Part shown: positions 29,472-52,360 of the stretch, piece by piece
Layout: each line of letters opens with the position of its first letter
How positions within the stretch are numbered: the stretch's first letter is position 1
The notes under the pieces: model-generated
Databases searched by the model: none
What the model was told of the DNA's origin: nothing
The model's input: the letters and a program-made list of their open reading frames with translations, nothing else
Translations under genes and position numbers: made by a program
Origin: Setoptus koraiensis
Lineage: Eukaryota > Animalia > Arthropoda
Direction of reading: 5' to 3'
NCBI GenBank assembly: GCA_048013815.1
Contig: CM106586.1
Span: 17,980,001 to 18,044,000 of the forward strand
Length of the DNA stretch: 64,000 bases

Positions 29472-29776
29472 CTAATAGTAGGGCTCTTGCGGAGGAGGTA
29501 GGGCAGGGTGTCCACCCATGGCATGGCTCATCATGCCCGGATGATGACCAGGTATCAGGCCCATAGCCTGTTGGGCCGAATGGACTGGACTACGGCCCAT
29601 CTGGCCTAATTGTTGTGAAGAATAGGCCGACATGGCACTAGACATGGCATGGGGCGATATGCCCATGCCAGAGCCGTCGACTACGCCTGGCGGGGGCCTG
29701 AATTGTTGGCTACCATCCATCATGTAGCCCATGGAGGCTTCGGGGCTGTAGGCTGGGCCGCCCGTTCCTATTGCAC
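29472..29776 (-). CDS. hth: hth terminal coding exon
   Basis: Acceptor ...CATAATAG (AG at 29778-29777), phase 1. Encodes [29 protein letters not shown]...QEPYY-stop. The upstream intron 30592-29777 is 816 nt. Confidence 0.85.
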
Positions 29777-32700
29777 CTATTATGATAATATGATTGTATG
29801 ATATTATGTCATGTGATAATATTAATATAAAAATAATAAAAATTTGGAAGATGAATTGCAAATGGTGCGTCACACATATCTGGCCCCTCATCACATGTTC
29901 TGGCTCGTATGTTCTGGCTCGTATGTGGCCATCGCAAGGCGCGTCGCAGCGCGCCTCAATATCGCGCAATGTCGCGCAATATCGCGCTCATAACAGCACA
30001 AAATCGCTCATAATGGCCCAATATGACTCGAGTAGAGCTCACGCTCATGACATATTCACAATATGCAGCAAATGACAGCCAGTCGTTGTCAAGACGCCGC
30101 CAGCAGCGACAAAAACAAAGCATCTGTTACGCAACCATCCAGTCGCGTAGTCGGTGTGTAATGGCTGGCGCGCTTATCAATAGGCGCGACTCAAAAGTCA
30201 GCTCAACTGTCACTTTGATGGCGACACTTTATCGGCGTTGATCTCTGATTGACACTTGCAAACACGTTGTCAGTTTATAGGTTTTTGCTGGCTGACGGGC
30301 TGGCTGATAGTGGCGCCCGTTTGCAATGTGTCACTGTTCAATCTATCATGCGGCATCGTGTGGCATCGTGCGATATCATAGGGCGCTGCGATGGTGTCAT
30401 TTGTGCGCGCCGGCATGTGTCATACGACGTCAACATAGTAGCATTATGAGGTGACACACATTTCATTTAAACGTCATCTTGGCATCATTTGCATGCATTT
30501 GATATTGCAAACGGCAAAAAGCTGACAGTGATACAGCTGACCATATAGAGTGTGTGCCATGATATAGGTTGGCTCCTTGGCGAGTCACTTACCTGCTCTA
30601 TTTGTTTGGTCAATCATTGGCTGCACAATTCTCCTTCTGGCATTGATAAACCTATCGATTGAAAGAGATATTGGGATAGACAGCAGTTCGAGGTTCGGTT
30701 AGTGTTATGGGCATTATGTTGGGCCAGTGTTATTGTTGTTGCATCTTGTGTTACGTAAGTGTCAGTTTAAATATCGCTACTAAGCGACCCATCGGCCGAG
30801 ATCGAGAGCATGTCGCAATGTTTGCGTCACAATGTTTGTGTCACAATGTTTGTGTCGCGACTTGGTGTCGCAATGTGTGGCCCAAACACTGTGACAGCTT
30901 ATTAGTCGGCTGTTAATCTCCGATCGTCAAATGGTGCGTTTAATCGTTGCGCAATTGTTGCTGTTTACAGCCGAGATTGCATTGGGATTGCGCCGAGATT
31001 GTGTCACGGCCAGCATTGTTGCTGCCTATTCGTCGGCGCGTTCGTCGGCGCATTCATTCGAACGATCCAACGGACACTGGTCAGCTCGGCGTGCCCGTCT
31101 CAAGCGGGCGCCGTTGGCCGTTGTTGCCCGTCACGTTGCGTGCGTCTCCAGTCATCGTGCTGGTCGTGTAGTGATGCGGATAAGTTGGCAAAAATGAATT
31201 TATTGAGTGCTGTTAAGTCAAGTGTGCCACTTGACCAGCCACCGCCGACACTGTCCAATGTCACTACGGACTGTCCAATGTCACTACGGACTGTCCAGTG
31301 TCACTGCAGACGATCTGCGCTGATGGTCCAATTGTGCAGCGAGATTTAATTGTCTTTGTTGTAACTGGCGTCTATGTCTTATCTGTCACGGCGTGTCCAT
31401 GTCGCATCTCACATGTAAGCGCGAGTGTGTGTACACAACAAATGCACGTTATGCTGGCTTGTCATTGTTGGCATCATGGCTTCATGACAAAAGTGACATA
31501 AATGCATGCGTTGCATAATGGCGCTGCCATGGCAACATTGTACGACAATGTGATCTGACAACTGATTCCACTGTCACTCAATCAGCGACTTGCTCATTGC
31601 TTGCCATTGGCGCCCATGCTGGCCAGTGGCCAATCATCACGCGACGCCTCGACGCAACTCTCCAGCCCGCAGTCTAGACTCTGCTGGCAAGACTCTGTTA
31701 CAGAGACTCTGTTACAGAGACTGTGCCGCCTTGCAAAGACGCCTTGATTGTTGCAAAGACACTGGCACAAACATACGGCTCGCGTTAGGCCAACAAGCGA
31801 GTGATTGCGATAATTAACAAGCATCGTCATTGGCTGTCACGTCGGTGTGTCGTCATAGTTGCGCAGTCGGTAGCTGCTAAAAAAGCGATTATGCAACATA
31901 CTTGCAATTGTGCAAAATTGTTGTTTGTCGGCCGGCGGCTCAGCGTGTGCCAGCGCTTGTTGCAACGACGCCAACCATGTCGGCAATAATAGTATTATAT
32001 GGCAATAGCATAGTTATAACATGCAATATGCAGTAACATAATGATAAAGAAATTAAATCATTTTTCTCTGTCTCTCGCACAGCTTGCACAGCTTGCCGAG
32101 CCAATGCCGAGCCAATGCCGAGCCAATGCCGAGACGACCTGTTAAGATTAATAATTTTCAATGATACACACACCACACAACTACCGCATTATCGCTCTTC
32201 GCTCACGCCGACCAGATTGTTGCAATGCACAAACTTGATTGATAATACCCTACTTCTTATCGTTATCTGGCTGCGAATCGTCGCTGGCTGCGAATCGTCG
32301 CTGGCTGCGTATCGTTCGCCGGCTTCGAATGGTCGCCCGTTCGCTGCGCTCGCCCGTTCGGCGCGGCTCGAGCTTCGTTTCGTCGGCTCGAGCCGGCGAC
32401 TGAGCGAGCCAACCGAAACAAGCATACGATCGCAAACGCAATATCGTTACCGTGGAGCTGGCGAGCGTCGCTTTTTATTATTCATGCCCTCTAATGAACG
32501 ATCGGATCGAGCCAACGCGCAGCCAGATTGCGTTTAACGGGCATGCATGAATAAGATTACGGCAATGCGTAATAGTTGATTAGTTTTAGCGCCGCTGCCG
32601 CAGCCGCAAAAGTTAAGCCATATCCTATAAATATCAAAAATGTTTGTTTGTTTGTGTGTGTGTTTGTGTGTCTCAATGAACATCTAGGCCAGCCCGATAT

Positions 32701-35700
32701 TAACAATCTTTTGTTGTTGTTCGTTTGTCGACAATTGGCTTGCAAGTTTTGTTGCGCACACTAATACTTTTTTGTTGCGGTGCCGAATTAACGAGACGCT
32801 CGCTCACTAGCTCGCTGACTGAATAATAAAAATTCTGACATTTATCAAAAATAAAGTTGCTCATAAACGTCTCCTCTTCTTTTTATCCATCTTACGCAGA
32901 GCCGTACACAGTCGCTCGGCAGAGCCTACACACAGTCGCTTGGCAGATCCGTCGCTGCCAGTCGGCTGGCGGTAGTTTGCCGAACAAAGCTGCCAGTTTA
33001 TTAGCCGCACTAACAACAACAACAATGGCAACAGCACGATTGCGTAAGACAATTGAACGGGCATCGCCACAAGTGAGCCAACCAGCCAGCCAGCGAGCTT
33101 ACCACTAGGAGCAGGCGTCATTAATGTCAATCATTATTATATATATTTATCAGGTGATCATGGTTGCGTCTGCGTGCATGTCGACATCGCCGGCCGCCTA
33201 AATGGCCTGTAATGTGCAATGGTTGCCGTTGTTGCAATGATGGCACCAGCGATCACCATGGCGACGACCGGGCAGCGCCAACAACGACAGCAACAACAAC
33301 GACGGCAACAGCAGCAGCGCCAACAACAATGATAACGACGACAATAACAGCGACACGCAGGCCGGAATGAACAACAATGGCTACATCAATTATCATGTAA
33401 TTGTTGGCCGCGATAAGGGGCCATTCTTCGCGTTGTTGGCTGCTGCTGCTGCTGGCTGCCGCTGTTCATTTGTTATGCAAATACCTCAAGTTTGGCCAAG
33501 TGCGCACCAGTCACCGGGTGAGCGAGATTGGATCAGATTACTTCCGCTTGTTTTGATGAACAAGCGATGTAGAAATGTTAATTGTGCCGGCGCCCCCTCG
33601 CCCCATTATACGCAATGGCTGCGCCAATGGCTGCATAGGCGTATCGGCGCTGTCGGTGCTGGCCGCCAGTGACAGGCACTGGCACCACCACAAGCATTGT
33701 CGGCAAACAGACGCACACTAAGTGGCATGAGTAATTTGCACGTGCTGCCTACAACAACAACAACGAGAACAACAACAACTAATTCAAATAACTGAAACCA
33801 ACGGTCGCATAACGGTCTAGCACGCGTTGCTCGCTGCATGTGTGTGTGTGTGAGTGCCATATATATAAATGTTGCCATATATTGCGCCGTGTGTATAGAC
33901 GAAATATAGAGTACGTGCACTGTTGTTTCACAGTACGTGCACGCCAGAATTATAGGGAAAGGCTATTTTTGTGTAATGTTGTTCCTATTTAGTTAGTTTC
34001 ACTTTTGGGCGCAGCCTCGCTGGGTTTGCCTGGCGCCCGGCGGCCCCGGCACTGGCGCCGCCATCACGTGCACCCGCCGATGGGAGGTGGTGGACATCGA
34101 GCGCATAAATTACTTTTGCTTTGCTTGTCAACCGGAAAGAGGGAGTACACCCCTGCGAGATGCTGGCGCTGCCAGCGCGCTTATTAGTTGCGTATCGCTG
34201 GCGATATTGGTTTGTTGTTGTTGTTGGCTCGGAATCGCCCTTCCAGGCGGCGACGGCGGCGGCGGCGGCATTGCGAGGCGCCATTTCGAGGCCGCTCGCA
34301 GTTCGGGGCCGCTCCGTGGCCGCGCCGCTCGGGGCCCGGCCACCGGCCGCCAACTGCAGCGCGACCCGCTGACACGGCCGGCTCGGCGTCTCGTTACCGG
34401 CAAAAACTGGCTCGCTCCGGCGCTCGATGGTCTTCTGTTTATGACGTATCAAATTTGACAAGCGTCGCACGATCGCGCGCGCCCGTTACCATAGTGTGTG
34501 TGTGTGTGTGTGTAACAAAAAGATGGCTCTTATATATTACATAAGAGTGATATTTGTGAATGCGAGCGCGTATGTGCCAACATCAACGCCTAATTACGCT
34601 GGTGGCAATTCTCGCCCACGGTCGGCCCGCGGTCTATGCGGCGACCGTTATACGTTTGCCATACGGCTGCCAGCGGCGCGGCATAACCGTACTTTTTGCG
34701 TTGCGTTTGTTGGCGTCGAGTTGCTGTGACGCTCGCCGTAGCCAGCGCCGAACAGAGCCCAAAAAAGAGGCACCGTGACCGGCCTCGCCTATACTAAATT
34801 CTCGTGTAATTGGACTTGTATGCCGACAGGGGCCGAGATTAGCCCCAGGGCCCGGCAGCGCGGGCCCCAGCTAAATCACAAGATTGCTGCTGCCGCTGCT
34901 GCTGCTGCCGCCGTGTGTAACAAAATTGCCAAGTGGATACGTTGCACATGTAATTACATACGCCACGTGTTAGACATCAACCACAGAGTCGATTGCATTT
35001 GATGCCAAATAGCCTCGTTCTGGCGTGCCCTCTCCGGACTGCCGGCGCTGGCCCGCGCTGGCGCTGATGCGGCCGGGCCCCACCAACGGCACATTGTCGA
35101 CAAACAATATCGCCGGAACGTCGTTTACGTAACGTCCGCGTGCTGTGCGTCGCGTATAAGTGTCTGGCGTGTATTATTAAACAGTCGGCAAACACACTCA
35201 CAGTTGGCCGAGAGCGCAGAAATTATTTTTATTTTGTCATTTTTCCAATGGCGCAGCAGCTCGCTGTTGCCGCTCGGTCTTGAGCCGCGCCATCAAGTTG
35301 GCCGCTATCATATTGCATAAGTGTGGCCCGTTGCCGGGCCGGGCCGGCCCTCAAATTGATAAATATCATACCCACGGTCTGCATGTCGGTCATATAACCC
35401 GGTTACGCGGCGCATGATTGATCGGTTAATCGCAAGCGCACCACTCTAGCCGCAGTTTGCCCACGAGGCGAAAGTTTGCCCACGCCACAGTTTGCACACG
35501 CCACAGTTTGCCGGGGCCAGAGTTTGCCGACGCCCGGGTTTGCGATCGCAAAATATCGCAAACCGGCCAAGAGGCAACGGTCAAGTGAGGTGTCGCCAGC
35601 AGTGACCAGCGCACTCGGAACGGGCCGGGATTAATATGGCCATATGTTGCTCGTTGGCGCCGCATGAAAAATCACTATTTTGGGGCCCCTCTGGTCGCCG

Positions 35701-38700
35701 TTTATGGCCGAGCCAAACAAGTCAACTGCTGCTGCCCGAGTCCATCAATATGCGGCCGGAAGAGAATTAAATATACTGGTTATAGGCTGGCCGGGGTATT
35801 ATATTATACAATTATGTATATATTCGCACTCCAGTTATTCGCTGGCGGCCAAGTCAGGGTCGTGCGTCAACACGCGGGCAGCGTGAGTGCGGATGACCGA
35901 GCGGCCGGCCGGCCGGATTAGGCCTGCGTTTGCGGTACATATACCACCTGAAACCGGCGACGTATCGACTAGATTAGCCGCTGGGTCAAATGGTTCATAT
36001 GAACCGTTATTGTGTAACTGTGGCACTTGTTACAATGTTGATCGGATTTAATGCTGGCCAGCAGCAGCAGCAGCCGCTGCCGCCTCTGCCGACGCCGCCG
36101 ACGCCGCCGCTGTTATGTCATTGTTAAGTAGGCGGACAGTGGCGGCCATGATGTAACATAATTCCTTCGGCTGGCGCGATGCGGGGCCCACGCGCTTAAA
36201 TGGCGCACGGTGGCTCAAGTGGGCGCTCGATTGCGCCAATTTGAGTGCATGCGGCATTGAGAGAGTCGATTAGATTTGACGCCACTGGATAGCGGATACT
36301 GATATTGGGCATATTGAGGCAGAGCGACAGAGAAAATCCCCTGATGAGTGCGATACTCATATTCTTTCCTATTATCGTGTTGTGTTGTTCAGTTCATCAT
36401 TTTGGTGGCGCTGCGTCATCACCCTGTGTATGGCTGGCAGGCTCAATTCAATTTCTATCCGCTCACAGCTATTGACTATTGCGTCACAACAACAGCGCTG
36501 CCCCTGTTAAAAGTAGTGGTGGCTACATAATACATAAGCCATAAGTTTGCGATCATAGCGCTGCCATCGACAATATTCACCATAACGAAATGAACGTGAG
36601 CAAATGGTATCAGGTTACAATACAGCGGCCGCGATAGATGCAAAAAAAAAATTGTATTATATATGAAAGTGTCCTCCGCTGTATGTACGGGCAATAATAA
36701 TCCAGTGCCTGCTATTTGGGCAAAATCGGATGAGCCGTCGTTGTTCTTCGCACTGCGTGCGAGCATTTGTTGACGAAGCCACCGAAGCGACAAAAGTCAA
36801 CCCGGCGGGCGCCCCCCAGTATATTATGTAATGGCGCATCCGCCGAAGTGAGCAATTTCCCTTTTGCCACTTTGAAAAATTTCACTCTATCTCTCGCTCT
36901 CAATGTGTTTGTGTGTACCTAAAGTAATCACCATAGTAATACAATATTTGCATCACTCCTCGTGCACGTGCTTCAGTAGATAGTTTGGATGTTTGGCCAA
37001 GTTGTTGGGGTTATTTTGCGCCTTACGCAGCAGTGTGGCAGCAGTAGTATGGCGGTAATATGGCGCAAGCAGTATGGCGGCACTGGCAGTCGACAGTGGC
37101 AGTTATGCCGGCTCTTAGATTGAGTTTGCTGATTCTTGCTGCTTTTGTTTAGCGACACTAAAATGCTTGCCCGTGCACAAGGCCACATACGGGGGCCCAG
37201 GCGGAGCGATGTTTGCGCCGGCGACCAAGAAAGTCGCCTCTCGCTCTATCACTCTAGAGAGGGGCATATTGTTGTTGTTGTTTGCTCGCAACTTCGACAC
37301 TCGCAACCACTACTTGAATTGCTGCTGTTGTTGTCGGTGGTGCCGTTGTTGTCGCTAGTGCCGTTGTTGTCGGTGCCACCAAATGACTGCTGGTGCTGAT
37401 GCAATTTTGAAAGAATGAGCCAAGCAGAACAAGTAGTAGTCGCGCAATGATGACGTGCAGCCAGTTTCGGGCTAGTTTGTCCAACTCGCAACGCGGTGAT
37501 GAAAGCCCTGTCCTGTGGCTCTCTCTCTCTCTTATTCTTTTCTTGCTTGGCCCCTCTGCTTTGCCGGCTCGCTCCCCAAGAATGCTGCCAGCCTCTGATG
37601 CGCTCTCTGGCTCGTTCTCTCCGCTGAGCCTCGAGCCTTGTGCCAATAGTGCCAAACTACCAGTTTGTGGAATTCTCTAGTTGGCGGCCACCGCCAGTTG
37701 TCGTTTTAGCGAAAGGTGTTGCCAGTGCCATTAATGATGGCACTGCCAGCACTGGCGCCTCAAACAAAGCGCCCCTACATTAAAGCTGTCTATATCCCCT
37801 GTGTATGCCCCCACAGTGTGCTCGCCCCATAGTCGAGCGGCCGTGCTCGGGCCTTGTGGGCGCCCCCGCCTCCCTCTGTGTGACATTCTGAGGCATTCTC
37901 ATTTATACTTGTCCAGAGATTAGATCACTATCTCTTTTATTCTATATGACGCTATATGTGCTCCCTCTGTCTCTCTCGCTCTCCCTCTCGCTGGCTGCTA
38001 TTCTTGCGCAATTTGCTGCCAGTCATTCAGTCAACAACAAAAACCAGCGGCAGCAACAACAACACTGCCTAAAGTTGTATAGACGAAAGACGAGTTGAGT
38101 TGGATGAGTTCAGTCATTAGTGCCAGCGACACGTATCTATGTGAGAGGCAGAGAGAGAGAGAGAGCGCGTCCGCGTGTGTGTTTTGGGCCCTCCCGAGAG
38201 TAAATCATTTTGAAATAATGATCCCTAATCTCTGAATGTGTTCCGTTATTGGTGACGGGCGCCCTACTACTAGCGCCGCCACCACTACTACCAATGCAAC
38301 AGCAAAACAACAACGGCAAATTCTGCTGCTGCTGCTATTAACTAAACGGCAACAAAGGCGACAATGACGACAACAACCCAGGATTGGCTGCAATGATCCA
38401 ATCCTAGCCAGTTGTGTAATTTCTGCCACCATCTATCGATGTCATCATTGCGCGCTGTCTGATCAGTGCTCTCGTGGACTTGAGCTAAAAAACTGTACTC
38501 ACATACATTTGTATCTATTTGTCCATCTTGGTCACACAATGAAAACTATTATTCCCTTATCTCCTCATTTTTCTCAAACACCAATAATGACAATCACTCT
38601 ACTCGCTCTGGCTATAATAGACGTGTTATAATTTCACACTAGATGTCTCTATCGGTATTGCTTCTTTTAATGTTGCCTTGTCCATATCTAGTTAGATGGC

Positions 38701-41700
38701 TAGCGTTCGAGTGCCAGGCGCAAGGTGAATCAACAATGGCTCCCCATGCCAGCCCACGATACAAAAGGCAACACTATATCCCTGTGTATAACCATGTCAT
38801 TGTTGTGTAAACGTTTACATCATCGTTGTCGTCATACTTGTCGCTTTGTAATCAAACAATGCGACGAATACAGCTACATTTTGTGTATGTGTGCGTGTGT
38901 GTTTGATATCATCCTAATTCATCACATACTTGGTTTTTGTAGTTAGTAGCGAGAAGACAACTAACCCGTGTTGATCGTGGTGCTTTTGTTCGCGATTGCC
39001 TTGCTCTCGTTAGGGTTCCCTCTATTCAATTTTGGTTGCTTGCTGTTAGTGTTAACTAAAGCTGCAAAAGAATTGAGAGAGAATTATTTTGGGAATGTTT
39101 ACAAGCCTAAGGCAGTATCGACTGTCTAATACCAAAGACACACGGTGATTCCAATTTTACACTGACAATATACTGAAAATATATATATGTGCTTGTGTGT
39201 CTATGAATAGAAACAACCCGATACAACTATTGGCCACCATTGGCTCTTTATCTCTCGTCGATTCCCGATGTGGTCCCAAACAGTATCCAGCAGCCAGCAT
39301 CAAATAAATACTAGACTAGCTGATACGCGCACTCTCACCAGGTGTCTCTATAACTAGGTGTAGTCTCTTTAGTTTTTTGCTATTCTCAAAATGATAGTTC
39401 TTCCCTCTATTCTGAAACTTTCAACACGAATGATACTGCTGCTGCCGCCGCCGCCTGATCTTATTTCCATGTGTTTCGTTTGTTGTTTGTTTGTTTGTTT
39501 GCTGGAAACAAGTCTCGAAAAATACAATTTTTTCCATCCACCATATACTATATAACAGCAACAGCAACAGCAGCCGTAGCAGCAGCAGCAACAGTGGTAG
39601 TTGACATGTTTTCAAAGAAGAACTACTGGATAAATGTAGCTGCCATAGCTAAATGTTAGTGTTAAATAGTTGTCGTCCACCATCACCTCCATGCCAATTT
39701 GTTTTAGCTGTTGAACTTGATGTAACAACAGCGTCAGCAGCAGTGGCACTTAAATGGTGTAGAATATGTTGAATATGACATGATGTAGAAAAGTCTATAT
39801 AGTATCTCTTTGTTGATAAGCGTGATGCTAGTAATAGTAGTAGTGGCAGCAGTGGCAGTTGAATCATAATATCAACTATTACCATGGTTTCGTATGAAAG
39901 TTTTAAATTGAAACAGCTTGCTAGGGCTTCAGATGATGATGGATTTGGATGGTTGGTTATATAACTATTGAATCTATATAGTGTGATATACAATGAGTTT
40001 CCATCTTGTTTATCCATGGCATCATAGCGATCTCTAAGTAAATAACAAACACTACAACTGTTGTGTACTGTTCGTGTGTTTCGCGAATAGTTGCGTTGCT
40101 TGTAAATAAATATCCTCTCTCGCTCCCTCTCCCTTGGTATCCAGCCACTTATATAAGAAGTACGTGTGGTTTTCTGTCTCTCACTTACATGGGCAAACAG
40201 TTGGCTGCTGAAGCTTATAAGCAATATTAGAAACAATCTTTTTCCTTCTACTTACTTGAAATAAGTAGTTATTTTTGTTCAAATATCCTATTCAATATAT
40301 ATATATATTCTATTCTACAGCGTACGAGCGTTGTCAAACACTGGCGTGAATTGTTGCGTGTAGTAACAATTGAGTGAAATCTGATACCAAACAATTGTGT
40401 ATGTATGTAGGCGAATCCAGTCACTCTATGTTCAGGTGACTAAAATGTATACAATTGCAAACATTTTTCGCTGACCTGAGGTACAAATTCAACACACACA
40501 GACACTCAATATGACTGACCATCACAGTCCATTTAGGGCTGATATTTGTCTGGTGAGGTAGGCAGGCACCTGACTGGCACTGCTACATGTGGCATCATTG
40601 TTGTTAGTGGCAGCGTGCTAGTCGCAACTACTTGCCGTAGTCTTAAATCAATCATGGCAGTAATGAGATGTTGAATTGTTGCCAACAATTATCGTCATCA
40701 TTATTATGTTGTTATCAATGTTGCAACAGTGGCAGCAAAAAAAAATCTGATAATAATAATAATGGCAAGGTAAGCAGCATTGGCGTGATTCTATTGGATT
40801 CCAGTTTGGTCTTCACAGTATACAGTATACACAACGCCACACAGGTGAACACAATTGAACATTGGAAAATATTGACCTTTGTCCTGTGTCGCAATGGCTT
40901 GGATGATGCCACTGGGCCCAGCATTGCTACCCCCGAATGTGTGTAAAATTAAATATAAAATAATCATGTCTGTGGTTTCACCCTCTAAGCTTCCAGAGTG
41001 AGCTTATCCCGAATAATGGAATAATGGAGCCTGCAATTTGCCTCCGCTGCCAACAACGCTTACGTATTGGCTTCTTTTTCTTCTTCTTCGATTGTGATCA
41101 TCAACTAATAATGATAATAAAAATTATAAACAAGATGGCTTCATACGATGGCTCCGTACGACATACGATTACTTGGGTAGGCAGACGTTGCGATGATGAA
41201 CGTTTATTTTTGATTTTCATTCGCATCACAGTTTCAATGGGCAAGCAGCAACAGAATAGATGTTGTGAAGTGCGCACAACAAAAGGTCACGAATTCTATA
41301 CGCCATCCGCCATTGTGTGCCGTCTACCAGATACCGTGCGTGTTGTGCAAAGCAAAACATTTTCCATGCAGCACCAGAGCAATTTTCGCTTTCGAAAGCG
41401 AGAATCAATAATGAAAATAATGAAAACATTTCTGACGTGTCCACCGGCATCGCGAAGCAATCACGCGCCGCCATCAGCGTGCCGATGGGGCCAAACTTGC
41501 TGGCCACAGCTCTGAAACTTGTTACTTATTATCGTCATGATCGTTTATAGAAACAGATCAGTGTTGCATCATCATATTTTATGCTCGCCTTATTGCGAGG
41601 GGCCTTGATCAGTGATGACTTTGAACGGTTGTTTGGCAAACAATTGCAAACTGGCAACGATAGTGGCTGAGAATAAACTGCTCACACCACATTGCACCAC

Positions 41701-44700
41701 TGACAAAGTGGGGATAATCTCTGGCTAATCTAGCTCCGGTATTCATGGCAATTTTTTGTTAGAAAAAAAATCACATTTTAAATTTAGCGCGCCCCGGATT
41801 ATGTTGTGTTATGGACAGCGAAGACGACGTTATGATTGTAGTGCAGGCAGAGCCAATTGTCGTTGCAATTGTCGAATCGGATCACTTGGGCACCAGATCG
41901 TGCCAGTTCGATTTGGCGCGACTCGATTCGGTCCGGTTCAGACGCTATCGGATCAGCCCGTGTGTGTGTGTGTGCGCTCAAAGCCAAACGGAGGCAAACA
42001 CAACAAAATGGAACAAATCGAATGGAATGAAATCAAAGTGTTCGATTCGATCCCCAAACCAATCGAATCAAACGGTTTGCACAACTGCTAAATAAGGGGG
42101 CGTGACAGGCCCTTTGTTATAGCCAATTGTGTGATGCGGCCATTGTGTGCTTTTGCGTGCCTTTGGGTTGTCGCCCATTCGCCAGCGGTACACCGGTGGT
42201 AGACCGGTGCTGGATACGCGGTAGCGGTGCGGGGCATTTTGGGTATGGGACGAAGATGTGCGCTCGTGACCAAGTAATTAATTCTTTTGCATCAATCGTT
42301 TGATGTTGCTGCTGCTCGTTTTGTCCTTATCTCTTGAGTGTGCAAATTGTTAAATTGCAAATTATTTTCTATTATTACTATCTTTAAAATAAATCTATCA
42401 TTCATCGTCAAACTTTTATGACAACGAACAGATAAATTAATGTCAGGCGTGTCCTATTTATTTTTAATGGAATAATGGAATTGTGATGGACACACAAACA
42501 CACACACACTGTCCGGATTATCGCCAATAACACGCACACACAGACCCGTAGGTGACAATAGAAAACAATCACGGATTTGTCTCCGTCTCTCTCTCTCTAT
42601 TCATCGGATACAACAAGCGACCATGGCCACCTCAGAGATGCATGTTGACTGCATGTCACTTGGTCGCCTCGTGTGACAACAACGGCTCACAATAGTCAAC
42701 TTTACGACAACCACGACCATACGTGACCACGGATCAAATTATTTATCACCACCACCCTCACCAATCATGACTGACCAATTGTGACTGACCAGCAACGACC
42801 AGCCACAATTTTTCACGATCATCATTGTATCTTATATTCCAGCAACGCGGCAATTGTAACAACACAGTCATTAACACATCAACGTTTTATGGGCCAAAAC
42901 ACGTAGCCCCCGTGAATGAGACACTGGTTGTGTGCTTGCTGAAGAACGCTGACAATTCTGCTGCTGCTGCTGCTCTCGTTTATCTTATCTTATTTATTTT
43001 ATTTCAACTGACAATCATCACGTCGTCGTCGTCAGCGAACCAACCAACAAACGAAGATTCTGTGGAAGATTGTTGGAAAATGCTCTCTAAGACTATACAT
43101 AGTTTCATTGCTGCTGTTGCTGCTGCAACTGCTGTTGTTGCCGTTCTTGATGCAGGTCGTAAAAAGATTATCATCACTGTTGTGAGAACAGCTACCAGTT
43201 TCTAGCGTACACAGGATCATGTTGCTGCCATGATGCTGGTGGCAGTGGCTTCGAAGCGCGTCTACTCGTTGCTTTTTCAGCATTACTTCACACTACCTTG
43301 TGTGTGCAAGCTCACCTGAGCACCGGCAACAGAAGCAACAACAACATCTAAAACGATCGAACCAGGGATGATTATGATGATGCTACCAATGATGCTAGAT
43401 TTGATAGGGAGAGTCGTCGTCGTCGTCGTCGTCGTCGTGAAATGTAAATCGCCACTATCATAGTCATATCAATGGTGAGCAATCAGCATCACTTCAATTT
43501 GAAATTGAAACTCATGTTCATGCTCAAGCTGAAATGCTGACTGTTTGTCCGTTCTCAAACAGACTGGACACACACGCATACACACATGAATTCGCTTCTC
43601 TCAGTTAATAGGTTTTTAACTCAGACACAGCATAACAAACAATTCTGCTCAAAGATGAGGAAGAAAAAAGATTTAGATACATCCATTATAACAAACTGGA
43701 AACTTCTTGATACTGTCGTCAAAAATGACGACAATGTTTGATAGGATGCCTCAAAAGCAAACTGTGCAATGGCTGCAATACCAGCCACCAGCAATTTTAA
43801 CTACTTGTCCGTGTCGTCAATGACCAGAGGCCACTTCATTGGTCATCTTCATCATTACTGTCCACGATGGACGCGGAACAACATCATCAATGATGTTAAT
43901 AGTACTGAAATGGTAGTGAAAGATTTTATAATTGTCGATGCTAGGGATCAATTGGTCAATTTGGCCAGTTAAAGAGAGATAGAGAGAAGAAAAATAACAG
44001 CTACAACTGTAAAATATCAAATCAACTACTAACTAGTTCGGCTGTATCCTACCTATTTTGCACTATCATCATCAGCAGCATCTTGTACACACACACACGA
44101 GCACAGACATGTTTAATAGGGAAGCAATCGAAGAATGTGTATTCAATATATATTTTAGGCGGTGGTGTTGAGCGTCGATTGTTGCTTTGGGATTCTAGAA
44201 TTGACCTTGGGCGTCGTCACCACGCTCATTATAGTCTATGCCACCAACACCGTGACCATCACACAACATCGACCACTTCTCATCTCTTCTTGTTCATTTT
44301 CTTCAACTTAGAAATCTAACAAGATACTGATGGCGGTGGTTCTGATGCTGCTGTAGTTAGTGATGTTGATGCTGTTGCTGCTGGTAATGTGGATACTATG
44401 TCGATGGTGGACAAGAATAAAAGGTGGAGAAGGCGAAGAAGAAAACTAAAAAGAAAAAGAAGGAGCAGAGCAACGAATAATAAGAAGTCTTTGTTGTTGA
44501 TCATGGAAAATGATAGTTGCAAGTTGATATGGTCAAGAGAAACAGACGAGAGGAAGCAGCAGGAGTTTGGTCTGCAACGATCTACCGGTAGATCGACCAC
44601 TGACTGCTGATTTTTATCTTTAGCTGCGCCCCTTCTTCCATAGCTGAATAGCGAAGAGCAGCCTGAAGCCACTACGGTATAAGATTTAATTTTGATTTTT

Positions 44701-47700
44701 GTCGTCATCACTGCTGGTCCATCTAATCAATAAGAAGGCATGGAATGAGATTTAGCACTTTTTGCCAACGTTTTCTTCTGCTTCTTCATCTATGGTGCAC
44801 TGATGAAAACCACCACTGTTGGCTATGATCAGGCGCGACAACAGCGACATGTGTTGGCAGAGGCTATTGATAGGTGAGTTTCGTTTGTTGATTATTTATC
44901 ATTATCTAAAGATTGTAGCTTCTTGTAGCGTGTGATGCTGTGAACATCTTGAAGAACTCATGACTATGGACAAGAACGAGAGGAGAATCCTTATTCTTAT
45001 TATAATTGTAGCTGGGTAGACAGACACATTATATCACTGGACCCGATCATCTTGATCTGATTAAAGGTAGACGCTGGTGGTAGTAGCAGTAGTCGGCATG
45101 TCCAATATATGTTGGTTGTGACCGGCCAAGAATGGAACAGACAGGAGCAAACATCTTTCTACTGGCTGACGTATTTTCATCATGGCCAGTGACACAGAGA
45201 AGTGACCAGTAGTGGAACCGATCAACAGATTGTTATCTATCTAAAATCAAATCTAATTCTAGGCGAGAGCGAAAACTTTAAAGAGTAGATGGAACTGCTA
45301 CTTCAGTGAGAATAGCGAGATTTTTTATCTTGGAGCCTGGTGAATCGATCTCAAAAAACAGAATAGATTATTTCAGAGGAGTAGGAGTAGAGAGCGATAA
45401 AGAGCGTTATCTTGCGAAGAAATTTATCGTCGTCGTCGTCATATTTGTATATGAAAAATAATGCACTAAATATGGATTTTTTCTGTTCATCATTTTTGTT
45501 GTTGGTGTTGTTTTGAGAGCATCGGCTCACAGAAAAAGAGCACAAATTAATTATAGACTCGCCCTTCATCCCTCTATAATTTTCGCATGTGTGTGTGTTC
45601 GAGTATCCCTAAACTAATCAAGTGCAATTTGGGTTTTGCAATAATATTATTCTCTATCGGACAGACAATGAGAATAGGCTAGCCGATAACAGAGGATAGG
45701 TACCACTTTTGGTGCGCCCTGCAATTGGTTCGCAGATGCCCCGCAAACAACACAGAGAGTTCACCTCGAAAAGAACAGCGTCACTGGCGCGATATATTTA
45801 GGAATGGGATGTGGATCAAATAGTAGGAGAAAATAGTGGTAGTAGATGTAGTGGTAGTAGATAATAGAGGCAGACAACAACTACACATTAAAACAGTGCC
45901 TGTCAGTCAAAGTGGACTTTTGGGGAGGGGGACAGGACTTTCCACTTGTCAATCACATTGTATGCGCCATGGAGTAGTAGTAAGCGCACATTAAATATTA
46001 ATTCTCTCTACAAACTATGGTGTGTCTCATTGGATAAATCAATAGGATCGCCATATTAGCAACAACAACAACAACAACACTGGCACTACTATATTTTTAT
46101 TCTGAGATCACTGCTAGCTCTAGAAGATTTGGCTGTGTCTATGCACATGGAATAGAGAGTGAACTTGTTATTATCGCCGCTACCACCACCACTAGTGGCA
46201 ACAGACTCACACTAACACTGTAGAAGGCGAAACAATATTCATAATGGTTGTTGCAGGAAGCATCATTTAAATGAGAAAACTAGTCTTGGGAATGGCGGTG
46301 GTAGTGGTGGTGTTGGTGTTGGCAGAGAGAAAAAACCTATAATAGTTACATGGTTACCATGTTACAATTTCCATTGGGCATCATCATCATCATCATACAG
46401 ATCCAATCCAATTGGAACAACACCAGCGTCTATGGGATTTGGATCAGCAGTGCTGGCAGTTGCAACAGCATTTGATAATTGACAATCAAAATCAACAACT
46501 ACTACAGAACACACGCATCACATTTGCATTGTTGCTCGCTGGCTGGCTTGTTGTTGTTCTCTTTAAAAGTTTCCACACCACCAACACCACCACCACCGCC
46601 GCCGCCGCCACCACCACTAGCATCACCAGCACGACTAGCGCCATCACTATGGCCACTATCACCACCATGGTCCCGCTGACAATCATGATGATGAGAGTGG
46701 CTACGAAGCGAAGAAAATTAGAGGGAGAGAGCGAGCAACTCGGGGGCTTTGGCGATAGACAAAACAAATGCTCTATAAACTGGTCCATGTCCTCTGACCA
46801 TTGACCATGTCCGTCTGTTGCTCTTGGTCGGCTGGTCGGTCGGCTGGTCTGCCGGCCAGCCAGCCAGGCTCGTCCGGCCAGCAACCGCTGCCAGTTCGAA
46901 TCCAACACACCAGCGTAGCAAGTGGGCAAGAAAGGAACTAGTCGCAACACAGTTTGATTGACAAGCGAAACTTGACTGACAGGCCAAACTGATGTTGGCC
47001 ATTCCAAATGGGATGGTACGTGTACTCTCGTCGTTTGGCCGCTCAAAAGAACTACCCGAGAACTACAACTCCAGTTTAGTTTATCTCTCTCAAAGTTTGA
47101 CCATGGTCTAAAAGGAGCGCTGAGAGCAACGTATGTGCTTGGCAAATGGTCAATTCTTGGCAACTTATTAACCATCATTTGTTGTTAGCGTCTATCTACT
47201 ACATTTGCTCTATGTTGTGTGTTGTGCCTATACATTTAGCATAGCAACTAAACAGGCTTTATTATCCAGTTGAAAACGAAACAACAACAGCAGCAACAAC
47301 AACAACAACAGCACCAGCACCAGCACCACCGCCGCCGCTGACAGGTGGTGTTGCCCGCCACACATTATATAGGACTGTCTAGCTTGCCAGCCAATGACCA
47401 ATCTTTATAGGACAAGTAGAGTGGTGCTGGTAGTGTCTGCATCAATTAATTAGCCTGTGTGGTAGTGGCGGTCTCTGTCTCTATTTCTGTCTTGCTGGTA
47501 TTGTATTGCATGTAACATGAGCTGGCTTGAAGCGGAGCGGAGGCATTCCATTAGCATGTCCACTGCTCGCGACAACAACGACAACAACAACAACAACTGC
47601 AACTGCTGGAATGCAACAAACGTGTCCTAGCGAGCGATCTAGTCAACTAAAAGAATTCCATAAGCTTCCCCCAATGATGATTATGCTACTTATCTAAGGT

Positions 47701-48144
47701 ATGTCAAGTATCTCATCAAAGACGCAGTGCGAGAGATGTGCCAAGGAAGAGCCAGACTCACTTGATGTGTCTCTATCCCCAATAATGATCTAATCTTAAC
47801 TGTGCTCACGATTATCATCATGATGGCCAGCCAAAGGTAGTATACGTGTGTGTGTGTGTGTGTGTTGGTGGATATTAGACATGGATACGCTATGATGTTC
47901 ATGAACACTTTCGGATATCGAGATGCCGATCTCATAGATCACACACACACACACTCACAAACATTCTTGTTGCACAAAGGTGAACAGTTTTGCAATTAAT
48001 GTAGCCACAGCAGATAACTGCATACCATCATCGGCATATTATCGGCTCTCATAGCAAGAATTTCATCAATTTAAATTCTAATACTTATGTGTATGTTGTG
48101 GCGCATTCCATCGCGACCGTGGCTCACGCCATGCTGCCATCGCA

Positions 48145-48176
<32 letters not shown>

Positions 48177-50386
48177 GAACAGCTCAATGGGGTATATTAT
48201 ATAATGTTGCTATCAAATATTAGTATCATACGCTGTTGTTGTTGTGATTTAATTAATTAGTCAAGCAATTGACAACTAAATGACTATGAGAGCAATAAAA
48301 TTTGTCGCTCAGCCATGGCCTGTCAAGATAATGACCAATCGCTTATTCAGGACACACATGCAGTGTGTTAGATATTATCAGCAATAGGGCAATAAATTGC
48401 TGTTCAACAACGACAACAATAGTAACCATAATAATTACTATAACAAGCAACATTATATAACATTAAATTAGCACCGATGGAGGTGGTGGTTGTATCTAAT
48501 CAAATATCAATCATCAGTGAAACAAGTCCATTCAGTAGTTAACTTGTTATACACCTTGTAGATAAACAACAACTTGTACGCTGGGCTTGTGTGCAAACAA
48601 GTGTGTGTTCAACAGCAATAGAACAGATTCTTAAGGTCGCTGACTTTTATGATAGAGGCAGCTATAAAAAATTTTAATTGTTTTCCTATTTAATGATGTC
48701 ACTGATGTGTCTACTGTGTATTTCTGCGTTCTTCAATCTACGCCAAGCGGCCATAAATGCGCTGATGGCGCACAGCTACTATCTAGATACAAACAACAAC
48801 AACAATGGCGACATTGTCTATGTTCGATCAACTGCATCATTTGATTGCTAATCACTGATATAAGACCACAATCGCCACCACCGTCGCCAACAACAACTAC
48901 TAATAATAATATTACCACCATCACCTGTTTCTAAAGAGCCTGCAATGGCTTGATGTGACTTGAATTGTGAGGGTGCCAGCTCCCCGAAGTCATTAATATT
49001 ATTGTCATTGTTGTTATTATTGCCGGACACACAACGATGCAGAGGAATCATAAAAACAAAGAGTCACATACTCATGGTGAACGCACTATATAGTGTCAAT
49101 CGATTGACAAATGAGCTACAATCACTCTTTTGGTTATTGTTGTTGTTGTTGCCACAGTTGTGTGATGCGCCACTGCAACAAACACACACACACACGCACA
49201 CGCTGCACGTGAATTGTCGTAATAATAATCAGATAATAGGAGGTATTATCCCCCATTTGCCTGATGGCCTTTATCTGGCCCTGATCCCCCTCCAACGAGA
49301 CACACACACACACAAGCAGACACAAACAAACAGTGAGACACACGGATGTGATGTTGGTCGGTGTAGTGACGCTCCCAAGTGGCCCAAGCGTCGCTCTTTT
49401 TGCCAGCACGTCGGGGCCCGAATCCGGGGCCCCAGCTCAGCCTGCGCCGCTATGATGTGTGTGCGCTATGAGTGCACGATTATAGGTGATCGGATTAGTA
49501 TCATCTGTTGTTATTGTTGCTGTTGTTATAGAGCGACGGTGGTCAAAACAACAAAACACTGCTGTGGCGCCATGACGAATTCCGGTCCAACAGGACCCAG
49601 ACTTTGTTTTCTGTATGTTTGACATGCAAGCGCATCTTACGTCATCAATTATAATGGATCTCGTGGTGGCAGTACTCTGGCGAGTTTATATACAACCAAC
49701 TCCTAGGGCCGCACACACACAGTACAGGACAGGACAGGGCGCACAAACACAATGAATACATAGTGGGCATAGTTATCAGCGGCATTGGGGAGCCCCAAAG
49801 ATGCTGTAATTGTGGTTTAATGGCCTCTACATTAAATTTGCGAACGAGCGCGCGAGATGCAGCAATTTAAGTTGTGTAAAGTGAGCATTGGTCATCATGA
49901 TAAGCCCAGAGTCTCGTGCGCGATCACGACACTCTGATGTAATATTATTGTTTTTGTTTGTGTGTGTAACTGCTGCTGCTGCTGTTGTTATTGCCGGACG
50001 AAGCTGGCCGTGTGATCGTTGTGGCCGGCGGACGGAATCGGCCGCACCACCGAAACGCTAATAACAATAATGGCACACACACACACATACTGAATATAAT
50101 GGTAATACTGGATAATAGCAATAAGTATAATAGCAATAATAGATACAATGGTGACTGGAAACTTACCAATTGTTTACTTGTAATATTGTTAGTCCCGTTT
50201 CAGTGGCCAATTGTTTCTTCTGATCTTCGCTTGGGTAGGGATGGGCTAAATGCTGAAACAGCCAATGGCGCATAATATTTGTGGCCGCCTTTGGGAAGAT
50301 TCCTCTTTTCTTTTGTCGTTTCTTGTTGCTTCTGTCCTCGTCGTCCTCGCATTCGGTTCCGTCGCCCGAGCCGACGCTTGCGTCGC
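29472..50386 (-). CDS. hth: homothorax / Meis TALE homeobox gene, 3' part (three exons; 5' HM-domain exons lie outside the window or were not found)
   Basis: Exons 50386-50167, 30651-30593 and 29776-29472 splice in frame with GT-AG junctions, giving a Meis-type homeodomain KKRGIFPK...[13 protein letters not shown]...[10 protein letters not shown]|[15 protein letters not shown] and an hth-like C-terminus ([13 protein letters not shown]). Confidence 0.95.
30593..30651 (-). CDS. hth: hth 59-nt exon encoding homeodomain helix 3 (W)[19 protein letters not shown]
   Basis: This exon is not in the ORF track. Read on the minus strand it is gatag|G TTT ATC AAT GCC AGA AGG AGA ATT GTG CAG CCA ATG ATT GAC CAA ACA AAT AGA GCA G|gtaagt. 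Confidence 0.95.
31251..31310. repeat. 20-nt tandem repeat x3 (CTGTCCAATGTCACTACGGA)
   Basis: Two exact copies and one diverged copy. Confidence 0.9.
31571..31584 (-). promoter_or_regulatory. Candidate Exd/Pbx-Hth/Meis composite site TGATTGAGTGACAG
   Basis: The reverse complement of CTGTCACTCAATCA contains an exact TGAGTGACAG decamer. Confidence 0.45.
32095..32133. repeat. 11-nt tandem repeat x3.5 (GCCGAGCCAAT)
   Basis: Direct inspection. Confidence 0.9.
32267..32314. repeat. 17-nt tandem repeat x~3 (CTGGCTGCGAATCGTCG)
   Basis: Direct inspection. Confidence 0.9.
45900..45955 (-). promoter_or_regulatory. Pair of Exd-Hth-type decamers (TGACTGACAG at 45900-45909; TGATTGACAA at 45946-45955)
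   Basis: Plus-strand CTGTCAGTCA and TTGTCAATCA, 46 bp apart. Confidence 0.4.
46955..46982 (+). promoter_or_regulatory. Pair of Exd-Hth-type decamers (TGATTGACAA at 46955-46964; TGACTGACAG at 46973-46982)
   Basis: Direct motif matches 18 bp apart. Confidence 0.4.
50167..50386 (-). CDS. hth: hth homeobox exon (helices 1-2, TALE loop, start of helix 3)
   Basis: (G)[74 protein letters not shown]|gtaagt. An alternative in-frame acceptor 12 nt upstream (exon start 50398) is possible. Confidence 0.95.
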
Positions 50387-50954
50387 CTAGGAACGAGCCT
50401 GGTGGCAAAATAATGCAATGGTGGCAAAATAATGCAATGGTGAAAATAACAATACAAACAAACACAGGTTAATTAGTTGATTGGTCAGCGGATGGTTTGG
50501 CATTGGTGAGATGATATTTGTGTGTAGAGATTGTATGGATGCTATACAATCTTTACGAGGGAGAATTGGCGAGGTGGCGGTAGCACGGTGCAAGTAGCGG
50601 CAGCAGCATTAGTGTTAGTGGCAGCGATAGTGGCAGTGGTGGCTATTACTCAACGTATTTGGCTAACGGTATTGGCGCTTCTCATGGCGCCCCTCGCAGA
50701 TTAGATTGGCTCTGATCTGGCTGGCAGAATGGAGAATTGATTATAAGTTTGCGGGCAATAAAAGTGTCACCATTGTGTGTGTGTGTCAGTCTAATCCGCT
50801 GTCCATTTGGCTGTCGGATACACCGCACAACATACATAGGAGTGGGGAATGTGCGTGTGCGGTCATGAATTGACAATTGCTACAATTGTCATTACAAGCG
50901 CCTAACTCATTAAATGACCATTCTTATATGGACACGATCGATATTAGCCGGCAC

Positions 50955-51011
50955 TGACAGCGACACTGACAGGGACAAGCACGATGACAGCCACTGAGTG
51001 ACAGTAAATCA
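50955..51011. promoter_or_regulatory. Cluster of Hth/Meis sites with an Exd-Hth decamer and an Exd-Hox site
   Basis: TGACAG at 50955, 50967, 50985 and 50999; TGAGTGACAG at 50995-51004; GTAAATCA (reverse complement TGATTTAC) at 51004-51011. Confidence 0.5.
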
Positions 51012-51590
51012 GAGGGTATCATCACACAATCGGGCCTCATTATTAATATCGCTCTTGCTGCTTGTTTGGATACTGTGTCGAGATGCCGACATCGTGTCGG
51101 CACCGGCGAGGCGCCTCATTTACCCGCGCGTCACTGTTTGTCCGCGCGTCGATGTTTGTCCGAGCGGAGGCCGCCAGAGGTGGGCCGCGACAAACGACCC
51201 ATGAGGCGACCCGTGTTTGCGTTTGGCCGCGATCGTGCGCCGGCGTCGCCGGCGCGAGTATCGGTGTCAAATATGACAATAGACGGATTTGATTTAATTT
51301 AATTCCGTGCCCATTACTATTCATGCTCTAATCTGCAGTTCGTGCACTCGTTGTCCGCTGGCGCTGCGCCTCCGCTCGCGCCGCGAACGCCGCCTTCGCT
51401 GCACGCTGCCCGCGTACGTGGCGTATTCTTTCGCCACGTAGCACGTGGTCAACAAACAATGGTACCGTCGGCTCTCGGTCGCCACACCCCCCGCTTTGGC
51501 TTGTGGGCCGGCCAACAAAGGCCGCGGCGCTTGACTCTTGTCTGCATATTGTCCGCAGTGCGCGCTGGCAATTGTTGTCGCTGCTGTTGT

Positions 51591-51622
<32 letters not shown>

Positions 51623-52360
51623 CTGTTGTTGCCGTTGTTGTACCGTGGCAACGCACGGCAAATAACGGCACAAATAGCGCGAATAGCACCGATAGCGCAA
51701 ATGGCACAAATGGCACCAATGGCACAGATACAGCAGATAGGCGGCATTGCGATGGCATATCTGCTGGCATTGGCTGGTCGACATGTGTGCTGTTTCGCTT
51801 CAATAGCCGCTCGTTTTGTTCGCCGCGTGGGCCCGCTCCTCGGGCTCGTCCACTGTCAACCTATAGCGTCGCGGGCTCCCCAACAAAGCCAACTTTTGAT
51901 TTGCGAACGAGCGCTCGTGGCAGCGCATCGGCGACGAGCCCGCAATTCGCTGGCGACGAGTCGGCGAACCGCGGGCTCCGTCCGAGTTGCGAGCTCCGAG
52001 CTCCGAGCAACGGAATCGGGACCCATGCGAGTTGCAGAGCGGCACAAAGGGCACAACGAACGCGCCAACAAAGGAACGAACGAGCGAAGAGAACGAACGA
52101 GCGAAGAGAACGACCCAGCGACGAGCACAACCGAGCGACGAGAACAAGCGAGCAGAGAGAAAAGAACAATGACACAGCGCCCTAGTGTCATCCGGCAGTC
52201 GCGGCGGCTCGAGTGACTGCGGCGCTGCCGTTGCAGCGCCAGACGCGCCACCAAATCGGACACCACAATTAATTGAATTTGTTGCCCGCTGCTCATTTGG
52301 CCGCTCCGACGCGGCCCAGCTCCGCTCTCTGGTGCGCAATTCGAATTGGAGCGCCGCCGA

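Follow-up and report, generated by a model that had tools for sequence, protein, structure and literature searches.

Do the giant introns of the hth gene of Setoptus koraiensis carry binding sites through which Exd-Hth dimers could act back on the gene? A first-pass annotation of the 64,000-nucleotide stretch analyzed here (the window) had proposed this after noticing six matches to TGA[G/C/T]TGACA[G/A] in hth, and had suggested that the introns are kept because they house such an array. The decamer class agrees with published Exd-Hth and PBX-MEIS/PREP sites. TGATTGACAG is given in PMC6023610 and 10.1101/706473, and TGAGTGACAG is reported as a Pbx-Meis motif in PMC8983046. The literature also covers the variants: G or A at the last position of the Pbx-Meis motif (TGATTGACAG/A, PMC3261376) and degeneracy of position 4 in the Pknox1 consensus SCTGTCAVTCAV, the reverse complement of which contains TGABTGACAG (quoted in PMC11240583).

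Results

The gene and its decamers

The gene in the window is hth, a MEIS-class TALE homeobox gene with an HM domain and a TALE homeodomain. It consists of four exons on the minus strand and hosts all six decamers, every one of them intronic (Table 1). The best database relatives of the HM exon are Meis/Hth proteins. For the exon encoding the first part of the homeodomain, the best solved relatives are Meis1/2 homeodomains (E = 1e-23), with 41 of 47 residues identical to the Meis2 homeodomain of 4xrm, followed by TGIF and PBX homeodomains as the next-best structural relatives of this class. The two homeodomain exons were searched one by one; the encoded homeodomain is Meis-like, with an intact WFINARRR recognition helix on the second of them. 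Two giant introns were found, one of 19.5 kb within the homeodomain and one of ~25.5 kb upstream, the latter running beyond the window end. The earlier description of an hth gene with giant introns in an intron-poor, here eriophyoid-type, genome holds. Long open reading frames of the 19.5-kb intron contained no Pfam domain, and the intron matched no Rfam family. The window part of the upstream intron is GC-rich, with 22% short tandem arrays.

Table 1. Features of the hth locus, in window coordinates unless a prefix is given
Feature	Position	Strand	Evidence or remark
hth last coding exon, C-terminal tail	29472..29776	-	acceptor AG 29778-29777; frame continuous to TAG; stop codon 29474-29472
Small hth intron (816 nt) with near-match TGATTGACAC at 30246-30255(+)	29777..30592	-	read from sequence
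hth exon, second part of homeodomain, with coding TGATTGAC inside	30593..30651	-	acceptor AG 30653-30652; donor GTAAGT 30592
19.5-kb hth intron, cutting the homeodomain within a Trp codon (TG/G); five of six decamers	30652..50166	-	splice signals
Solitary decamer TGAGTGACAG with TGAT just before it (TGATTGAGTGACAG)	31571..31580	-	CCAAT 26 nt upstream, same strand
Near-match TGATTGACAT	33124..33133	-	mismatch scan
Non-coding 2-kb block containing pairs 1 and 2	45537..47557	.	collinear with relatives' single contigs, three runs, ~95% identity
Pair 1: TGATTGACAA, 36-nt spacer, TGACTGACAG	45900..45955	-	inverted copy of the pair-2 module, ~28-nt insertion
Pair 2: 18-nt tandem repeat, 2.1 copies, units 15/18 identical	46954..46990	+	TRF; unit comparison
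hth exon, first part of TALE homeodomain	50167..50398	-	Pfam Homeobox_KN E = 2.9e-15; splice signals
Upstream hth intron, window portion; ends ~11.96 kb outside the window	50399..64000	-	sequence, flanking exons
Decayed 12-nt tandem array, four TGACAG	50952..51004	+	TRF: 50952-50977, period 12
HM-domain exon of hth, single 5' exon	L002:1963-3009	-	Pfam Meis_PKNOX_N (PF16493), E = 3.3e-43

All six exact matches lie where the annotation had placed them, at 31571(-), 45900(-), 45946(-), 46955(+), 46973(+) and 50995(+), as do the near-matches at 30246(+), 33124(-) and 21489(+), and positions 1-29 kb hold no exact match. The optimal decamer TGATTGACAG has no exact occurrence in the window; all six sites are one position off, departing from it at decamer position 4 or 10. 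Four of the six fit the Pknox1-type TGABTGACAG, and the remaining two fit TGATTGACAA. In pair 2, each repeat unit carries one decamer (TGATTGACAA at 46955 and TGACTGACAG at 46973). The decamer at 50995, TGAGTGACAG, forms the fourth and last unit of the 12-nt array, after which the sequence reads TAAATCA (minus strand: TGATTTA).

Strength of the motif excess

Genome-wide, the annotated motif occurs 1295 times in 48.76 Mb. For the 19.4-kb span that the annotation considered, this rate predicts 0.52 sites against six found (raw count P = 1.7e-5), and block dinucleotide shuffles of the span predict 0.47-0.56, so that the earlier expectation of ~0.25 has to be raised to ~0.5. The whole window holds six matches against 1.18 expected, a number reached in 0 of 100 shuffles. 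No 19.4-kb span within the initial 3.65 Mb of contig 1 has more than three, which speaks for a genuine excess in hth. Overall, the raw excess amounts to 6-10-fold; for the 3' half of hth, the figure is 3-10-fold. When duplicates were collapsed, about three events remained against 0.52 expected (P = 0.016 for the annotated motif). The enrichment in hth appears real, yet the annotation overstated it.

Related words gave a similar picture. TGABTGACAG accounts for four sites against 0.2 expected, and the core TGATTGAC occurs five times in hth against 1.3 expected, its reversed word not at all. In an unbiased test that allowed up to one mismatch to TGATTGACAG, we counted 11 sites in 30.2-53.1 kb, limits that were set after the sites had been seen, and 5 in the remaining 121 kb covered. 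Among control decamers matched for composition, just 0.1-0.6% equalled this stretch (0.07-0.7% with neighbours collapsed); with near-matches included, collapsing left 7 clusters where about 2 to 2.5 were expected. Over the whole hth gene, the corresponding numbers were 11 and 5.1 (P = 0.016). For the annotated intron alone, the collapsed count was equalled by 5-11% of matched controls and was not significant. Depending on the test, matched-decamer P values after removal of duplicates thus ranged from <0.001 to about 0.1. The excess is not spread over both giant introns, as had been supposed, but limited to 30.2-53.1 kb; the rest of the upstream intron, ~23 kb, contains one site. Neither the Hth monomer word TGACAG nor the Exd-Hox words TGATNNAT and TGATTTAY were enriched in hth, and exact DECA sites showed no concentration near homeobox genes among the matches listed.

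Origin of the site pairs

The six decamers trace back to about three independent events, with pair 2 a tandem repeat, pair 1 its inverted copy and the 50995 site part of a 12-nt array. Local DNA duplication thus made half of the hth decamers. The annotation had pointed to two tight pairs built from an identical set of two words. These pairs are present; the extra support it drew from them is lost, because an 18-nt tandem repeat and its inverted copy are related by duplication and therefore show non-independence. Between the arms of the inverted module, the decamers have 0 mismatches in 20 positions, and the flanking positions have 3 in 19 as well as all indels, a comparison that reaches only P = 0.11. 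Pair 2 with its 18-nt unit and the TGACAG cluster at 50.95-51.0 kb with its 12-nt unit are examples of the short tandem "stutter" arrays in this genome's non-coding DNA, which number 2-5 per kb across the hth and exd introns. The pair-2 module differs from these in that it recurs, inverted, at a distance of 1 kb, in a copy that has diverged except in the decamers.

The 2-kb block around both pairs is collinear with contigs of runs X7-X9, at a divergence (~5%) that gives conservation no power. In runs X7 and X8 the pair-1 decamers are unchanged, next to a 36-nt spacer that differs at four positions; the probability that 20 nt stay unchanged by chance is ~0.4.

The partner gene exd

Both DNA-binding partners, Hth and Exd, are encoded in the genome. 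The PBC-domain exons of exd lie at C2:16678033-16719561(-), over the Pfam cut-off, and its homeodomain at C2:16677695. This gene has giant introns too, and its cluster of TALE/Hox motifs is denser than that of hth: TGATTGAC occurs 8 times against 1.7 expected, TGATTTAY 9 against 2.0 and DECA-type sites 5 against 0.6. A canonical ATGATTGACAG adjoining TGACAG is also present at this locus.

Discussion

Three known systems come closest. In SELEX-seq, Drosophila Exd with full-length Hth prefers the head-to-tail TGATTGACAG within the 12-mer TTGATTGACAGC (Kribelbauer et al. 2019, 10.1101/706473). The mite pair-2 units TTGATTGACAAG and TTGACTGACAGG each match this 12-mer at 10 of 12 positions, whereas none of the mite sites is optimal, each deviating at decamer position 4 or 10. 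Conserved non-coding enhancers of vertebrate meis2 and PBX3 are rich in Pbx-Hox, Meis and Pbx-Meis motifs, and auto-regulation has been invoked for them; conservation of their sites spans lamprey to human, and reporter mutagenesis has proven their function (Parker et al. 2011, PMC3261376). In the mite, too, clusters of candidate sites for the TALE complex occur in the non-coding DNA of its cofactor genes. In contrast to the vertebrate case, the hth sites are sub-optimal and half stem from recent duplication, and Pbx-Hox-type words are enriched in mite exd and not in hth. In zebrafish blastulae, DECA sites (TGATTGACAG) are occupied by Prep:Pbx together with NF-Y; they are mostly exact decamers, defined by ChIP, and often do not act as enhancers alone (Ladam et al. 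2018, PMC6023610). The mite sites share with them a 10-bp layout in which Pbx and Prep/Meis half-sites adjoin near developmental genes and, at 31571, a nearby CCAAT.

Our tentative reading, to which we give slightly less than an even chance, is that 30.2-53.1 kb of hth is cis-regulatory DNA with a few sub-optimal Exd-Hth sites that provide TALE input, their count being inflated by duplication. The candidate regulatory stretch would comprise the intron that splits the homeodomain, together with the initial 3 kb of the upstream one. An Exd-Hth heterodimer would sit head-to-tail on each decamer, with TGAN contacted by Exd and TGACAR by Hth, and the input to hth could come from the gene's own product or via cross-regulation between it and exd, a scheme proposed for vertebrate MEIS2/PBX3. 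An 18-nt tandem duplication created the two-site module, an inverted copy of it arose at a distance of 1 kb, and a further site is a unit of the decayed 12-nt array. The hth introns are thus plausible candidates for TALE-responsive enhancers. Exd-Hth binding and enhancer activity at the decamers are predicted from their sequence, feedback on hth is a reasonable hypothesis, of a kind already known from vertebrates, and the decamers may have a role in keeping the giant introns. For enhancers, we counted the excess of sites with up to one mismatch, the TGATTGAC excess, the intact decamers in the inverted arms, the excess in exd and the vertebrate precedent (PMC3261376); against them, the reduction to about three events, the missing TGATTGACAG, the missing excess of TGACAG and TGATNNAT, and the pervasive arrays. 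We consider it doubtful that an ancient circuit of TALE self- and cross-regulation, like that inferred for vertebrate MEIS2/PBX3, links hth and exd and has survived in one of the most streamlined arthropod genomes, with the giant introns of both genes kept as enhancer housing despite general intron loss, and with new sites supplied by micro-duplication and then retained by selection.

It is nearly as likely that one to three near-consensus words arose by chance, were multiplied by the tandem and inverted micro-duplication found throughout the non-coding DNA of this genome, and caught the eye of a motif-minded reader, with no function at all. Both the 18-nt repeat of pair 2 and the 12-nt array suit this explanation, and short arrays are common in the hth introns (2.3-4.5 per kb). 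Genome-wide, TGACAG triplets are as frequent as those of the reversed word (330 vs 334), as are decamer pairs (5 vs 6 reversed pairs). The collapsed intron tests give P of about 0.05-0.11, and the absence of an optimal site and of an excess of TGACAG or TGATNNAT points the same way. Moreover, many transcription-factor genes were implicitly open to a like test, and spans with three sites are not rare, making up 8 of 100 site-anchored spans on contig 1 (first 3.65 Mb). Chance accounts less well for the collapsed excess with near-matches, for the lack of reversed words, for the independent enrichment of this motif class in exd and for inverted copies that have diverged everywhere except in the decamer segments.

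Functional sites could also serve without feedback, bound by TGIF-type or Iroquois TALE proteins, by bZIP/Maf-like factors or by Exd-Hth with Hox as upstream patterning input, which we regard as improbable. In the variants, the Exd half-site (TGAG, TGAC) or the Hth half-site (TGACAA) is not the optimal one, an Exd-Hox-like TGATTTA adjoins the 50995 site, TGIF and PBX homeodomains rank next after Meis, and Meis and Pbx-Hox motifs cooperate in vertebrate meis2 enhancers (PMC3261376). However, the Exd-Hox words are not enriched in hth, and the word that is enriched, the composite TGATTGAC or TGABTGACAR, has the arrangement preferred by Exd-Hth (10.1101/706473). As to the inverted pairs, arms about 1.1 kb apart with identical segments of 11 and 13 nt might suggest that a small, MITE-like DNA transposon with terminal inverted repeats had inserted in the intron. 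Yet the arms and the 1.2-kb stretch, like the entire 2-kb block, are matched elsewhere in the genome by simple repeats only, the two-decamer module is unique genome-wide, no target-site duplication is visible and the block is collinear in diverged relatives. This origin is largely refuted, and we consider it very improbable.

At present, the hth result is a modest motif excess read from DNA sequence. Its main practical value lies in two compact candidate enhancers, hth 45.5-47.6 kb and a 6-kb block of exd. If the sites are functional, TALE cofactor genes would be wired to their own complex in this mite, which would extend the logic from vertebrates to chelicerates. The locus would then also be a small test case for regulatory content that protects long introns during genome streamlining, and for tandem micro-duplication that seeds clusters of identical binding sites.

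The hth gene and its introns

The gene called hth in the first-pass annotation, on the minus strand of the window, encodes an HM domain and a Meis-like TALE homeodomain, which confirms its identity. Exons were searched one by one and not as a joined spliced protein. The homeodomain exon was nearest to solved Meis1/2 homeodomains (41 of 47 residues identical); the best Hth matches in the protein database were 56 to 65% identical, over the HM domain only, and no Hth of a close relative was among these matches. The homeodomain lies on two exons, and therefore the 19.5-kb intron between them splits the codon of the recognition-helix Trp. From the position of the HM exon, 12 to 13 kb past the window end, it follows that the upstream intron is ~25.5 kb long. 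The donor of the HM exon (L002:1963, CAG|GTGAGT) is in phase 0 and the only plausible acceptor of the homeodomain exon (50398) is in phase 1, needing one nucleotide from the exon before it, so this ~25.5-kb interval must contain either a small additional exon or a different splice site or donor.

Features of the hth and exd loci (unprefixed positions refer to the window; L002, hth-locus DNA past the window end; L015 and L016, exd-locus stretches; C2, contig 2; G000, the genome)
Feature	Position	Strand	Remark
hth exon, entire HM domain	L002:1963-3009	-	PF16493, E = 3.3e-43
hth exon, first part of TALE homeodomain	50167-50398	-	Pfam Homeobox_KN, E = 2.9e-15
hth 19.5-kb intron	30652-50166	-	between the two homeodomain exons
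hth exon, remainder of homeodomain	30593-30651	-	
hth last exon	29472-29776	-	preceded by an 816-nt intron
exd PBC exons	C2:16678033-16719561	-	
Dense 6-kb block in giant exd intron	L015:5001-10000 and L016:1-1000 (G000:C2:16705001-16711000)		

The genome comprises 48.8 Mb in two contigs. Because introns are absent from 84% of the genes in a published eriophyoid genome and the median intron there measures 170 bp (PMC7738191), the hth introns are outliers. The upstream intron (51000-64000, continuing to L002:1962) has a GC content of 0.52 to 0.64, consists to 22% of short tandem arrays with periods of 7 to 40, and contains many long open reading frames on both strands, with no Pfam match among those tested. 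Arrays with periods of 7 to 40 nt are widespread, at 2.3 per kb in the 19.5-kb intron, 4.5 in the upstream intron and 4.1 at exd.

The gene-dense part of the window harbors a full-length gene for the U5 spliceosomal snRNA at 17518-17639 on the minus strand (Rfam RF00020, 65.5 bits). A 1650-codon open reading frame at 19313-24265 (-), with no Pfam family at E <= 0.01, may encode a large orphan protein.

Raw excess of composite decamers in hth

A pattern search of the 64-kb window for TGA[C/G/T]TGACA[A/G], the Exd-Hth (PBX-MEIS) composite decamer as worded in the first-pass annotation, returned exactly the six matches claimed, at 31571(-), 45900(-), 45946(-), 46955(+), 46973(+) and 50995(+), and the near-matches at 30246, 33124 and 21489 were also present. 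Five decamers are located inside the 19.5-kb intron and the sixth precedes the homeodomain exon by ~600 nt. They comprise TGAGTGACAG, TGACTGACAG and TGATTGACAA, each twice; the optimal decamer TGATTGACAG, which is selected by the fly Exd-Hth dimer (10.1101/706473), is not among them. The degeneracy allowed in the motif is not arbitrary, as it matches published consensus variants: position 4 is C, G or T in the Pknox1 consensus (PMC11240583), TGAGTGACAG has been described as a Pbx-Meis motif (PMC8983046), and the final G/A belongs to the motif employed by Parker et al. (PMC3261376).

A CCAAT box at 31606-31610 (-) precedes the 31571 decamer on that strand by 26 nt, an arrangement that may recall the pairing of NF-Y and decamer sites in zebrafish (PMC6023610).

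Across the window, six matches compare with 1.18 expected, and none of 100 dinucleotide shuffles reached six. Genome-wide, 1295 matches to the motif (26.6 per Mb) compare with 926 to its reversed word, used as a control. At this rate 0.52 sites are expected in the 19.4-kb span holding the six (block shuffles, 0.47 to 0.56), twice the 0.25 calculated originally; the raw count there has P = 1.7e-5, and three is the maximum for any span of 19.4 kb within the initial 3.65 Mb of contig 1.

As an unbiased test, we counted sites departing from TGATTGACAG at no more than one position (genome-wide rate, 108 per Mb), of which the window contains 13 versus 5.75 expected. The 144 kb examined hold 16 such sites, 11 of them within 30.2-53.1 kb. 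In the rest of the upstream intron, ~23 kb, there is a single site, and the excess therefore does not extend across both introns. A permutation control of the decamer gave very small p-values; it was discounted, since dinucleotide composition predicts fewer occurrences of permuted words than of the real motif, and was replaced by control decamers matched for Markov expectation. These equal the real motif in 0.2 to 1.8% of cases for the 19.5-kb intron and 0.1 to 0.6% for 30.2-53.1 kb; after collapsing neighbors, the values are 5 to 11% for the intron proper and 0.07 to 0.7% for 30.2-53.1 kb, a span chosen post hoc.

Related words gave a mixed picture in hth. Neither the Hth monomer site TGACAG (14 clusters versus 13.6 expected) nor the Exd-Hox word TGATNNAT (14 versus 17.6) is enriched, while the composite core TGATTGAC occurs five times versus 1.3 expected, with one of the five coding. 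Among the sites listed, exact decamers showed no enrichment near homeobox genes.

The six sites reflect about three events

Four of the six decamers form two tight pairs. Tandem Repeats Finder resolves the pair at 46955 and 46973 (46954-46990) into 2.1 copies of an 18-nt unit; the units agree at 15 of 18 positions, and of the three differences two coincide with the two degenerate positions that the motif had to allow. The pair at 45900 and 45946 is the same two-site module, inverted, 1 kb away and with an insertion of ~28 nt. The decamer at 50995 represents the fourth unit of an array, now decayed, with a 12-nt period; this array also supplies all four TGACAG of the adjoining cluster. The six sites thus amount to approximately three events, for which P = 0.016. 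The sites of the proposed intron enrichment were described accurately; its statistics were overstated in expectation, independence and extent.

Tight pairing, cited earlier as support, lost its weight, since five pairs occur genome-wide versus six for the reversed word, although both hth pairs belong to the five. The four-TGACAG cluster was likewise dismissed as independent support, given its array origin and the genome-wide number of TGACAG triplets (330 versus 334 for the reversed word). Derivation of the inverted pairs from a transposon or MITE was rejected because the genome is without any other copy, and the metagenome contigs scanned contained no match to the two-decamer module.

The module in its two copies and in relatives

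Substitutions and four indels separate the inverted module copies, and the 20 decamer positions are free of all of them. In an objective alignment, mismatches between the arms number 0 of 20 in the decamers versus 3 of 19 outside (P = 0.11), superseding a hand alignment (0 of 20 versus 6 of 22, P = 0.02). In three public runs of diverged relatives, contigs align collinearly with 45537-47557 at ~95% identity. In two of these runs, X7 and X8, both decamers of the 45900/45946 pair are identical and four spacer positions are changed, which at such divergence carries almost no weight. A nested gene or RNA behind the conserved block was rejected, as the long intronic open reading frames contain no Pfam domain and the introns no Rfam family.

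Across the hth intron (window 45500-51400), the contigs of X7, X8 and the third run, X9, represent lineages ~3 to 9% diverged from the assembly. They can serve directly for proper footprinting.

Motif excess at the partner gene exd

Comparison with other long introns covered hth intron 1, the flanks and exd, which likewise has giant introns. Motif excess is greater at the exd locus than at hth: in 80 kb, sites with no more than one mismatch number 21 versus 8.6 expected and, with neighbors collapsed, TGATTGAC occurs 8 times versus 1.7 (reversed word, 1), TGATTTAY 9 times versus 2.0 (reversed word, 3) and the decamer class 5 times versus 0.6 (reversed word, 2). A dense 6-kb block within a giant exd intron likewise gives a stronger signal than hth, with collapsed counts of 11 versus 3.1 for TGATNNAT, 4 versus 0.24 for TGATTTAY, 10 versus 4.1 for TGACAG and 3 versus 0.14 for decamer-type sites. 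Within it, a canonical ATGATTGACAG adjoins TGACAG at ~L015:9149-9165.

Each of two candidate exd exons 12 kb apart, L016:9418-9561(-) and L015:7326-7469(-), encodes the first ~48 PBC residues, at 50% identity between them. They may reflect an exon duplication or may serve as alternative or mutually exclusive first coding exons.

Interpretation

The likeliest reading, which we hold tentatively, is that the 3' part of hth is cis-regulatory DNA with a few suboptimal putative Exd-Hth sites, some of them multiplied by microduplication. The site excess and the decamer positions spared by differences between the module arms are consistent with it. Chance plus duplication is nearly as likely an explanation: the tandem, inverted and array-derived copies speak for it, as do the collapsed control values in the intron proper, and the one-mismatch excess within 30.2-53.1 kb, which survives collapsing, speaks against it.

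Feedback of Hth on its own gene, and feedback as the reason for retention of the introns, are both conjectural. Self-regulation of TALE genes is an already known kind of system. Among vertebrate conserved elements, those of MEIS2 and PBX3 rank with the richest in Pbx-Hox motifs, an observation that has been read as autoregulation (PMC3261376), and the motif excess at mite exd parallels it. If real, hth would be a new member of this known self-regulating TALE kind, in a chelicerate.
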